DNA of 64,000 nt. Origin: Haliotis rubra (Eukaryota). This document shows positions 55,801-61,800 of the stretch, one piece after another (within the stretch, counting starts at the first letter, position 1; each line of letters opens with the position of its first letter). Location of the stretch: positions 620,001 through 684,000 of the forward strand of contig NW_025765336.1 in the NCBI RefSeq assembly GCF_003918875.1, read 5' to 3'. Under the pieces are notes generated by a model that saw nothing but the letters and a program-made list of their open reading frames with translations, did not search any database and was not told the origin of the DNA. A program made the translations under genes and the position numbers.

Positions 55801-58800
55801 TGTGTTGTCCCCCGCAATGATATTGCTGGGAAATTGCTAAAAGTGTTGTAAACCTCACTCACTCACTCATTCAAACCTATGCGATTGTGATGTAATGGTG
55901 TGCTGTGAGGTGGTTTGTTGTTGGATAGGGTGTGCGAGACTGAGGATGTGCGAGAGGAATGGTATGTTCAGGAGGGCAGCATCCATTGTTTCTATTCCTG
56001 TCTTGTTGTCAAAATCTCTTGATTGCAAATAGAAGTGGAATAAATAGAGAATCTCACCCGAGTTGATAAAGTTACTAGGCTTGCCGAGGATATCAATTAT
56101 ATCAACATGAGTTAGTTTTCAATGAAAAATGTACATCTCTCAACACTGTACAATTAGATTTGCAGTGCAGCGATGTCATAGCATTGTGATGTCATGAACT
56201 TGATGACGTCATAGCATTGTCAGGGCATTGTACAAAATCTACTGTCAAAACGATATCCCCTAGGAGATATCATATGATCTCACACATGCGATATCTCCTG
56301 TGGAACACAGTTTTGGATGATAAATGTATAACTATCATTAACCTGTGTGGGATAATATCATTAACCTGTGTGGGATAATATCATTAACCTGTGTGGGATA
56401 ATATCATTAACCTGTGTGGGATAATATTCTTCAACTGGGTTATTCCAGCTCATGCGCGTCTGATGTTCCGAGATGAGGTGTTGGTTCAGGATGCTGTAGT
56501 TGCCGTCACAGTGATGGAGTCTTCTATGCAGGTATGTAGGTGGGAGGCTGACAGACATGGGTAGCAGGCTGGTGGATAGAGATTTTGATTTTTGATTACC
56601 TGCCATATTATTGAAGCAGTATAGTGCATGTCTTTCATAAAGTTGACAAATGTATGCTGCAAGACCTTAATTTGCGAAGGCCCTTTGGACACAGAAATCA
56701 GAGATCTCACAGCCATAATGTTGGTTGACCGTCCCAGCCAGGCAATCAGTAAACTGCTGCCTCCATGGAACTGGAAATTTTAACTAATCCTGCACTACTT
56801 ACTTCCTGCACTTATTGCTTACGACTCGAAACGTGGCTGTGCCAGACGATTGATGTTGAAAGTGTAGACTGTGATCACTTCCTGGTCTCGGGTAAACATC
56901 CGTCTGCGCACGCATCACCGGAAGGTGACGTCAGCCACCTCAGATTATTGCTTTTCGCATGCCTCGCAAGACGTGTGGTTTGCCAGCTCGACTGATTTGT
57001 ATCCTATGAATTGTGTTTATTGATAATAAACTGACTTTTGGGTGTTTTCCTTTGTTTTTCAGAGGGTGTAGGTATTACCCTTCTGTTTCTTTGTTGTAGT
57101 ACTGTTGTAGTGATGGTGTTTGTGTTAAACACGATAGTTTTCATCACTATTATCGGTCCTTAAGCCATTCAGAACATGTGAAGCCCGATGTATTCAGTAG
57201 TGGCTTGTTCTTGGCTCATGCTTATTTGTTATACTATTATAGCCTAATGGTTATATTAAGCCTTAATTCTGGTCTCCAATCTTGTCAGTATTTGTGAGGC
57301 GTTTGTTCTCAATTATGTTGCTGAATTTCCCGTGTGTTCCTCATTACTATTGTAATGTTTTCACCGTGGTTTGCTGGGGTTTCTGCTATGTTGCAGTTTC
57401 TATCAGTATTTGTGAGGCGTTTGCTGTATAGTTTGTAAAGGCGGGGTATCTCATAAGTGCCTTCATTCATGCTGTTTGAATTGCACTTTTCCCTGTTTTT
57501 CCCTGTTTTTCACATGAATGAATGTGCTTGTTGCGCTTTCTTAATATATCATCTTGACACCTTTTTTCTGTCTATGAAGCGCCAGGTCCAACACCGATGT
57601 CGCCTATGGCAAGCACCCAGATTCTTGCCACACCACTGATGTCCACTAACTCTAGGGCGTCTGCCGCTCCGTCTCCATTCTCCAGGTTGCTGTTTTCAGA
57701 GAATGGCAGGCGTCATACTCCTGACGCCTAAGATCCATGCGCCGCACGCTCAGCAGTCACTGGATGTTTCGACATCCATTCCACACTTGACCTAGTTAGC
57801 AGGGACTGCAGCGCCTGTACGGCGCATCTACCAAATCGACTATGACCTCTGCGTTCAGCAGTTGGTGTCAGCGTCTCCATCGCCATACCTACCTGTTCCA
57901 GCTTCGTTCCTGACTACAGCAAATGTATGGTCTACCTGATCCAGCGCCTGTACGGTGCCTGTAAACCATACTTACTCACTCCAGAGCCTGTATGGCGTTT
58001 CCACCAGATCCAGCGCTTGTATGGCGCCTATAACACCATACTCACTTGCTCACTCCTATAAAACGGCGCCTACTCACTCCAGCGCCTGTCCTGTCAATTA
58101 GATCTAGCGCCTGTACGGCACCACCAGCTGTATGGCGCCTCTACTAGATCTAGCGCTTGTACAGCGCTACCAGCTGTATGGCGCATCTACTAAATCTAGC
58201 GCCTGTACGGCGTTACCAGCTGTATGGCGCCTCTACTAGATCTAGCGCTTGTACGGCGCTACCAGCTGTATGGAGCCTCTACTAGATCTAGCCTGTAACG
58301 GCACCACCAGCTGTAGCTGTACTGGCCTCTACTAGATCTAGCTGTTGCACGGCGCTACCAGCTGTGCTGTATGGCCTCTACTAGATCTAGCCCTGTAACG
58401 GCCCTACCAGCCGGCTGTACGGCCTCTACTAGATCTAGATCTAGCTTGTACGGCGCTACCAGCTGTATGGCCTCTACTAGATCTAGTGCCTCTACGGCAC
58501 CACCAGCTGTATGGTGCCTCTACTAGATCTAGCGCCTGTACGGCACCACCAGCTGTATGGCGCCTCTACTAGATGTAGCGCCTGTACGGCGCAACCAGCT
58601 GTATGGTGCCTCTACTAGATCTGGCGCCTGCACGGCTACCACCAGCTGTACGGCACCTCTACTAGATCTAGCCTGTACGGCACCACCAGCTGTATGGCGC
58701 CTCTACTAGATGTATCTGCGTATGGCGCCTAGCCAGCGGTATACTCATCTAGGCTGTACGGGCTACTACTACCACTAAGCCTGTATGGCTGCCACCAACT

Positions 58801-61800
58801 GTATGGGCCTCTACTAGATCTGGCATATCGCACCACCAGCTGTATGGCTCAATTAGATCTAGCGGCTTGCCGGGCACCAGCTGTACCTCTAGCTATAGAT
58901 ATGGCCTCTACTATCGCCTATACGGGCGACCAGCTGTATGGCCTCTACTAGATCTGGCGCCACGGCACCACCAGCTGTATGGTGCCTCTACTAGATCTAA
59001 GCGCCTGCACGGCACCACCAGCTGTATGGGCCTCTCTAGATCTAGCTATTGTACGGCGATCTATTTCAGCGCTAATGCGGCGCCCGACCAGCTGTATGGC
59101 AGCCTCTACTAGATCTAGCTAATAGATCATGCGGCGCTACCAGCTGTACGGGCACCTCTACTAGATCTGGCCTGTAATGTATGGGCTACCAGCTGTATGG
59201 TGCCTCTACTAGATCTAGCGCTTGTAACATGCGGTACCAGCTGTATGGTGCGCTTCTACTAGATCTGGCGGCAATGTACGGCACCACCAGCTGTATTAGC
59301 CTCTACTAGATCTGGCGCTTTGTACGGGCGCTACCAGCTGTATGGGCCTCTACTAGATCTAGCGCTTATACGGCGCTACCAGCTGTATGGTGCCTCTACT
59401 AGATCTGGCCTGTACGGGCGCTACCAGCTGTACGCTTTACTAGATCTAGCGTCTGTACGGCGCTACCAGCTGTATGGCGCCTCTACTAGATCTAGCGCCT
59501 ATAAACCAATACTCACTCCAGCAGGAAGACACTGCGATGGAACAGTGTTGGACTCTGAATACTGTGTTCCAGCAGCGTTTTTGCCAGATTCAGCACCTAT
59601 ATGACGCCTCCACTATATCCAGTGACCCAACACTGCCGCTGTTACAGGTCATTGGCTCCCTCCCTCTGCAAGCAGTTTGCGTTCTGCTGTTTATTTTGTT
59701 GACAGTTACATAGACAGATCCTCGAATACCAATGCACAAAATCGGTGATTTACAATGTGATTAGGTTGTCTGACAAAACATCCACTTGCACAGTTTGAGA
59801 TCGATTGGGTCATTGGATGAAGAGATATTTACAAACAACCGGGTCCACATGCATTTCATGCCAAACTTTAGGGCGAAATGATCGACGGTTCTCTATTTCG
59901 CCAATATCGTCTGTTGTCAGCGTGAAGACGTTCCTGTGTTCCTCTTGTGTTCAGCTGGTGTACTCAGTTTGTACATTAAGCGAACTCAAGCCATCAGAGG
60001 CATGTAAGCAAAACCCCGAGTGTTTTGTGGATACGGACTTCCTTTATTCATGCGTATAATGCGGCTGATCTGGTTTCCCCTACATCTGCGCCAACCTCCA
60101 GTACTTCGCTACAATCGCCTCTACGATGGCGCTTCACTGTCCCTGTACAGTAGCGCTTCACTGTACCTGTACAGTGGCATTGATAATGCAAGGAGTGTTT
60201 CTAGAAGTCGGACACAGTCTTCGCCAATCAATATCCACACCATATGTGTCCAACGCTTCAGACCATGGTGCCAGACCAGCACCTCAACAATCCCCGAAGG
60301 ATATCACATCCTACATTGTTGTTCGCAATGAAGCACGGCGATGTCGTGTGGGGAATGAGTTGTTTTGAGCAAAACAACTGGGTATGTTAGTTAAAGGACT
60401 AACACTTGGATAAACTCAGGGCCATGCTTCTTACTGCATTCCCTAAACCTAATAACGCTTTAAAAATCGTGTGACCTTTTCCATTTAAGCGTACATGGCT
60501 TATATGCGAATTACCACTGAGATGTAATCCCTCTCTGTCGACCAGTCTTCCAGATTCCACGAAGGTGTCTTCATTCATGATATTTCTTCCCACGAGGCAT
60601 GATGTCGCCTTGTGGGAGAAGAGGTGTTCCGAGGGAAACAACTGGGTGTGTCAGTTAAGGAGCAACTCTTCGAAAAACTCAAGTCAATGCTTTTTACTGC
60701 ATTTCCCCAAAGCTAATCTCGCTTTAAAAACTGCATGGTCTTTTCCATTTAAGCCTACATGTCTTATATGTGAATTACCACTGAGAGATAGTCACTGTCT
60801 GTTGACTATTCTGCCAGGTGCTACGAAGATACCTTCCACCATGCTTTTTCTTCCCATGAAGCACGCCGACGACGTATGGGAAAAGAGTTGTTCCAGGAGA
60901 ACAACTGGGCGTGTCAGTTAAGGAGTAACGCTTGGGTTAACCTGAGTCACTGCTTTTTACTACATTTCCCTAAAGCTAATAACACTTTAAAAGTCTTCTG
61001 GTATATTCCATTTAAGACTACGTGTCTTATATGCGTAATACTACTGCCTGATCTAGGTGCGACGGCGGTTTTCCACCACCATGGCGAACTTGACCGAGAT
61101 GTCTTTGTTTACCTTGCGAGGCAATCCCCACAGATGACACACCCTCCATCCTGCCTGTCCGATAAATGTGCAGGAAGTAAGTAGTGCAGGATTAGTTAAA
61201 AATTTAGTAAAATCTAAATATTTTATATATTTGTATACTTATCCTGCACTTCTTATGATAAGGGCCCACCCTGCGCTTTCACTTACTTCCCTGCTTTGTT
61301 TTCATCTGTGGGATTTACGGCAATAATCTGAGGTGGCTGACGTCACCACTGACGGATGTTTACCCGAGACCAGGAAGTGATCACAGTCTATGCTTTCAAC
61401 ATCAATCGTCTGGCACAGCCACGTTTCGAGTCATAAGCAATAAGTGCAGGAAGTAAGTAGTGCAGGATAAGTATACAAATATAAAAAGTATTTAGATTTT
61501 ACTAATATTGCTGAGTATGGCGTTAAACAACAAACAAATAGTAAACTGATTGATTATCATTTTTGAATATGCTTTTATGTGCATCTTTGGGTGCAGTTCA
61601 ATAGCAGAATTGTCTGTTTAGGCAGTTTTACCTCACCCGTAAGAAGTCCCAAACAAACATATCCCCTCACCTGTAAGACTGTCCTAAACAGTGTCTATCT
61701 CCCCTGTTTCCAGGGGGCAGCACTGCTGGGTGGTGTGAACGCCCTACATACAGCCTTCCCAGAGGATGCAGAAGATGAATACAGGCTTCAAGGTAGAGTT

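Follow-up and report, generated by a model that had tools for sequence, protein, structure and literature searches.

Organization of the element at the locus

We analyzed a stretch of 64,000 nt from Haliotis rubra (contig NW_025765336.1, positions 620,001–684,000), hereafter called the window; all coordinates below are window positions. At 56777–61505 on the + strand lies a predicted non-autonomous DIRS1-like element of 4729 bp, bounded by ATTTTAAC...ACTAA, whose limits are set by its inverted terminal repeats (ITRs) and internal complementary region (ICR), by the junction positions in 20 other copies, and by the junction that the ICR encodes. The element interrupts the tail of a short interspersed nuclear element (SINE), of which the left part occupies 56690–56776 and the right part 61506–61538, both on the + strand. 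This insertion of a DIRS element in a SINE tail is an ordinary case, because the other genomic copies show an aim at a six-letter AT-rich core and not at SINEs.

The left ITR (56783–56951, +) is comprised of two arms, 56783–56904 and 56924–56951, and the right ITR (61320–61472, +) is followed by a right-end extension to 61505. The arms at 56783–56904 and 61351–61472 pair over 122 nt with 97% complementarity (pair I1), and a perfect 28-nt pair (I4, 100%) lies further inside. The ICR (61168–61255, +) joins reverse-complemented copies of the left end and of the right end, in that order. Specifically, 61168–61204 pairs with 56775–56811 over 37 nt at 97% (I3), while 61204–61255 pairs with 61454–61505 over 52 nt at 94% (I2). 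This combination of ITRs and ICR at 56777–61505 is the layout of DIRS1-like retrotransposons, which bears out the DIRS-type identity proposed in the initial annotation of this DNA, and the ICR would be the template of the circle junction. The interior is mostly taken up by an array of ~46-bp tandem repeats of about 2 kb (57786–59640, +; direct repeat families D1–D13) and by a ~264-bp direct repeat in three to four copies upstream of the ICR (60330–61046, +; families D10, D12 and D14). No open reading frame (ORF) longer than 118 aa was found inside the window copy, and a tyrosine recombinase ORF is absent there.

The SINE tail at the insertion site

The left junction reads ...CCATGGAACTGGAA from the SINE into ATTTTAACTAATCC... 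of the element, and the right junction reads ...GATTTTACTAA from the element into TATTGCTGAGTATGGCGTTAAACAACAAACAAA. The target is CTGGAA/TATTGCT (the slash marks the insertion point here and below), and removal of the element restores the motif GCTGGAATATTGCT. The rejoined flanks give CTGGAATATTGCTGAG followed by a family-A tail. The element had been noted to sit exactly inside a tail motif of two SINE families, and this position is confirmed by the rejoined site. The left part, a decayed family-A copy, ends with ...CTGGAA, the left half of the tail motif; its upstream limit is approximate, with similarity fading. The right part begins with TATTGCTGAG... and continues into an A/C-rich tail, and its agreement with the SINE copies of the window, determined by BLAST, is 91% over 35 nt. 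In a MAFFT alignment the rejoined site clearly matches the family-A copies of the window in the tail-proximal stretch only, while the upstream part is decayed. Since the similarity to family-A copies fades upstream, the target SINE would have been old or truncated.

With ≤2 mismatches allowed, the window contains 18 copies of the 14-mer GCTGGAATATTGCT, where 0.5 would be expected; exact copies in the 1.38-Gb genome number 170,099. The motif is common to two SINE families, A and B, that have different bodies and different continuations on both sides of the motif; their tails close with CAAA-type or ACTC-type repeats, and together the two families cover roughly 8–14% of the window. The motif, GGAATATTGC, contains AATATT as its palindromic centre. 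SINE families with different bodies and one tail derived from a long interspersed nuclear element (LINE) have been described, and the common tail was read as a sign that one LINE partner mobilizes them (Matetovici et al. 2016, PMC4758252). Two SINE families with a common tail module are ordinary (PMC4758252); the likeness, two families with different bodies and one common tail module, bears on the target DNA only and not on the DIRS element. A scan of the window against Rfam at gathering thresholds gave no match, and a full-text literature search with the SINE motif as a string found nothing. Additionally, the copy near 52133 has a tRNA-like stretch, seen by eye only.

Element boundaries and the exchange point

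A left-end search of the genome returned many copies at 94–99% identity, and the terminal 21-mer TTTTAACTAATCCTGCACTAC has 211 genome matches at ≤1 mismatch, about half of which are ICRs. Twenty other copies (L001–L020) were retrieved; left flanks were read in all 20 and right flanks were readable in 13, while the remaining ~80 copies were judged through junction patterns alone. Across copies the invariant bases are ATTTTTAAC at the start and ACTAA at the end, and the junction ACTAA/ATTTTTAAC is encoded by the ICRs of seven of eight copies. At its left end the window copy has four T, one fewer than its own ICR and the family.

The target and the circle junction have AA in common, at 56775–56776 and 61504–61505, and the exchange point could fall anywhere within this shared dinucleotide. 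The full AA is common to about half of the copies, and 16 of 20 share a single A. A second independent insertion, C1158, lies at the same position of the motif in a family-B SINE, with GTTGGAA joined to ATTTTTAAC on the left and ACTAA joined to TATTGCTAAAAG on the right. Both empty sites, that of the window copy and that of C1158, can be rebuilt from the SINE consensus with nothing lost and nothing gained. On this ground, the TATT that follows ACTAA is target DNA, and no target-site duplication was made.

In the published model of DIRS1-like integration, the short junction sequence recombines with a matching genomic sequence and no target-site duplication is made (PMC3266345); an exchange within AA that leaves no duplication agrees with this model. 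The crossover in an AA shared with the circle junction, without a conventional target-site duplication, had been proposed from the window alone; the ICR junction, the two rebuilt empty sites and the published model (PMC3266345) uphold it. One other copy, L020 (G000:C2089, ~1003633–1009300), sits in a 44-bp minisatellite with at least three units upstream and two downstream. The ~44 nt alike on both sides of it (~88%) were considered as a long target duplication and rejected, as the element lies within the minisatellite.

Target preference across copies

The flanks of the 20 other copies show a strong position-specific preference for A/TWTT (W, A or T) in A/T-rich surroundings. Position −1, the base before the element, is A in 16 copies and T in four. 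On the right, position +1 is T in ten, A in two and G in one of the readable flanks, position +2 is A or T in all 13, position +3 is T in 12 and position +4 is T in 11. On the left, A and T prevail for at least 11 nt before the element, and positions −4 and −5 are mostly A or T, not the GG of the SINE motif. The flanks are otherwise unrelated between copies, with only A/TWTT in common.

The same signal is seen genome-wide. Among 59 intact right ends, ending ACTAAT and recognized as ...TTTAGATTTTACTAAT, WTT follows next in 37 (21 ATT and 16 TTT), compared with 8.7% of background AAT sites; the background was 130 kb of non-element sequence, taken from the window and the neighbourhoods of DIRS copies. 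AATATT is thus the commonest target of this DIRS family, accounting for 21 of the 59.

These data bear directly on a reading in which the element inserts at random, without any sequence preference, so that the SINE hit is a coincidence and the shared junction bases belong to the element termini. With SINEs covering 8–14% of the window some insertions into them are indeed expected, and two of the 21 sampled copies lie in SINEs. The excess of WTT after the right ends is not what random placement predicts, however, and the bases after ACTAA restore the SINE consensus at two loci, which makes them target DNA rather than element. Moreover, position +1 varies and position +2 alternates between A and T, as target bases would. 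We therefore regard random insertion as very unlikely.

SINE tails as targets

The initial annotation had further suggested that the recombinase uses the tail motif as an att-like site, which would turn SINEs into self-renewing landing pads. In its full form, this proposal holds that the 14-nt motif itself is recognized and that the expansion of SINEs makes preferred landing sites. Two observations favour it: two independent insertions occupy the same motif position, one in family A (window) and one in family B (C1158), and the copy C1225 has GAAGGAA before the element and TATT after its right end.

The other copies do not follow this pattern. At the junction, the SINE motif is absent from all 20 left flanks of the other copies and from their 13 readable right flanks. 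When the flanks of these 20 copies were compared by BLAST with the SINEs of the window, only L008 was placed inside a SINE, ~20 nt downstream of the motif; one copy in 20 is what random placement would give, the SINE cover being 8–14% of the window. In a junction-spanning BLAST, with ~40 copies per junction, no match of another copy extended across the SINE flank. The deepest reach into that flank was ~10 nt on the left (C2349), and 8 nt (C2348) and 6 nt (C1158) on the right. Unrelated flanks in other copies had been named beforehand as the outcome that would speak against targeting, and unrelated flanks, with no enrichment of GGAA/TATTGCT at the junctions, are what we observed.

The counts at AATATT allow a closer comparison. 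Two of the 21 AATATT ends, the window copy and C1158, continue with GC into the motif, and none of the 21 continues with CC, the motif reversed. Among background AATATT sites, read in orientation, 14.1% continue with GC and 10.6% with CC, which gives 3.0 expected against two seen for GC (P(X≥2) = 0.82), 2.2 expected against none for CC, and 5.2 expected against two with both orientations pooled. SINE tails are hit repeatedly, but no oftener than their share of AATATT predicts. The GC of the motif is lacking in 19 of the 21 AATATT insertions, and 38 of the 59 right ends lie at sites other than AATATT. Tests for a specific target of more than ~6 nt found none. Together with the non-SINE flanks of the retrieved copies (L008, elsewhere in a SINE tail, excepted) and the A or T at positions −4 and −5 where the motif has GG, these results leave SINE-targeted integration most improbable, and the landing-pad idea is not supported. 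What stands of the proposed use of the motif by the recombinase is its AATATT centre, which is the commonest target and which C1158 enters at the same position; the extended motif is not enriched.

Four further copies touch on this question. The left flank of L008 (G000:C294, ~149300–149435) lies in a family-B SINE tail, at ...GTAAAACTAAAT, and where SINEs are hit, a local AAT-type core and not the motif sets the position. The target of C1225 (163248, 169410), GAAGGAA/TATT, resembles the SINE core on the left, while its right flank continues with neither GC nor CC; a decayed SINE or a chance likeness could account for it. Two copies, G000:C535:1491742 and G000:C2458:261207, read TGGAAATTTTAAC, with four T, as at the left end of the window copy, and a single mismatch within the element. 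They fail the longer SINE-flank pattern and have no SINE-like bases further upstream. We did not include them among the SINE hits; they may represent older members of the family or different ones.

A coding relative and the genomic context

One of the 21 sampled copies, window copy included, is coding. This copy, L006, has a gag-like ORF of 496 aa without a Pfam match, a second ORF with reverse transcriptase (PF00078, 52.2 bits) and RNase H (PF17917, 28.5 bits) domains, and a third ORF that matches tyrosine recombinase (PF00589, 27.6 bits against a cut-off of 27.1, E 2.9e-06). A methyltransferase-like domain between RNase H and the recombinase sets DIRS1-like elements apart from Ngaro and VIPER; the relevant ORF parts of L006 gave no Pfam match to such a domain even at E up to 1, and Pfam may lack a suitable model.

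The window copy matches L006 at 1–360, 4700–5299 and 8160–9812 only, and the segment 360–4700, including the part for reverse transcriptase and RNase H, is lacking. The direct join of L006 position ~360 to ~4700 is found in 18 of the 19 other sampled copies and in the window copy. Because nearly all of the sample carries this same join, a single non-coding derivative has outnumbered its autonomous relative, and the window copy is a member of this amplified, non-autonomous deletion derivative, presumably mobilized in trans. Between its ends, the derivative retains ~5 kb of non-coding sequence that includes tandem repeats.

L006 additionally carries a second, diverged ICR-like stretch (original coordinates 5248–5293 and 5473–5521; element ~4430–4705) that matches the right half of the ICR at 85–86%. 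This stretch directly follows the recombinase gene and precedes the functional ICR by ~5 kb. Fusion or nesting of a compact DIRS element with a long non-coding module may have given rise to the family.

Open frames on the + strand flank the element in the window, one at 56388–56531 that ends at GT and one at 61714–61791 that starts after AG. As these frames end at GT and start after AG, the element probably interrupts an intron of a gene on the + strand. For the upstream frame there is a weak, sub-threshold match to the last part of the MCM AAA-lid domain (PF17855, 13.7 bits, E 0.09). The window also contains two runs of N, at 12891–13031 (141 bases) and 28485–28652 (168 bases).

Discussion

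Our data very probably describe a non-autonomous DIRS1-like derivative that was inserted by the recombinase of a coding relative into a short AT-rich core, which by chance was the AATATT of a SINE tail. In the steps that this explanation would entail, the cDNA would be completed on the ICR to give a double-stranded circle with the junction ACTAA/ATTTTTAAC, as inferred from the family. The recombinase supplied by the coding relative would then exchange strands with chromosomal sites that resemble the circle junction, the likeness lying in the core (AA/TATT and AA/TTTT, compared with AA/ATTTTT at the junction). SINE tails would be hit as carriers of about one-seventh of the AATATT hexamers of the genome, without the recombinase reading the SINE. 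We further lean towards the view that the core of about six bases, A/TWTT, mimics the circle junction, and that a SINE tail of more than 170,000 copies, holding about one-seventh of AATATT sites, passively enlarges the landing area while remaining untargeted.

Several points weigh against this explanation. The action of the recombinase and the circular intermediate are drawn from the family; even for DIRS-1, of which the cDNA is mostly linear, a circular intermediate is still under debate (PMC7192593). In four of 20 left flanks T and not A precedes the element, so that a shared AA is not obligatory. Both flanks were read in only 13 other copies, with ~80 judged by junction patterns, and the background was estimated from 130 kb and not from the whole genome. 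Finally, two SINE hits cannot exclude a roughly twofold preference or avoidance either way.

A post-insertion bias, in which copies survive in AT-rich, gene-poor DNA and their flanks reflect retention rather than the choice of the recombinase, deserves the least credence: A/T-rich left flanks (at least 11 nt) and the apparently intronic position of the window copy would fit it, but regional selection cannot give T in 12 of 13 flanks at +3 and 11 of 13 at +4 beside adjoining positions of background composition.

The DIRS1-like elements of molluscs, including LgDIRS2 of Lottia gigantea, AcaDIRS and LgDIRS (Piednoel et al. 2011, PMC3266345), share with the present element the ITRs, the junction-templating ICR and the lack of duplication, and L006 likewise has gag-like, reverse transcriptase/RNase H and tyrosine recombinase ORFs. 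LgDIRS2 has AAT at both ends, and AT-only terminal trinucleotides are a further likeness (PMC3266345). Unlike these elements, the window copy is non-coding and carries ~2 kb of 46-bp tandem repeats; the ends here share at most AA instead of a clean 3-nt overlap, and the flank preference A/TWTT is longer than the 3-nt rule published for DIRS1-like elements (PMC3266345). DIRS-1 of Dictyostelium discoideum, the founding member of the order, likewise has a tyrosine recombinase and ITR-like ends, and its ICR is required for retrotransposition (PMC7192593). DIRS-1 reportedly prefers pre-existing repeats, namely its own copies, whereas no particular repeat family is preferred here and the flanks are diverse, unique or AT-rich.

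Long target sites are characteristic of the att sites of phage lambda Int-type systems and of R2 in 28S ribosomal DNA. Targeting of SINEs would place the present element beside these systems, but the target found here does not exceed ~6 nt. If true, SINE-specific targeting would have been a new case of one mobile element homing to another, and a route to harmless sites; it does not hold. The recombinase specificity of the DIRS1-like group has not yet been tested by experiment (PMC7192593). The lasting value is modest but usable: a measure of how one DIRS1-like family chooses its targets, consisting of the A/TWTT signal, exact element boundaries and two duplication-free empty sites, which together give a concrete substrate design for an integration assay.

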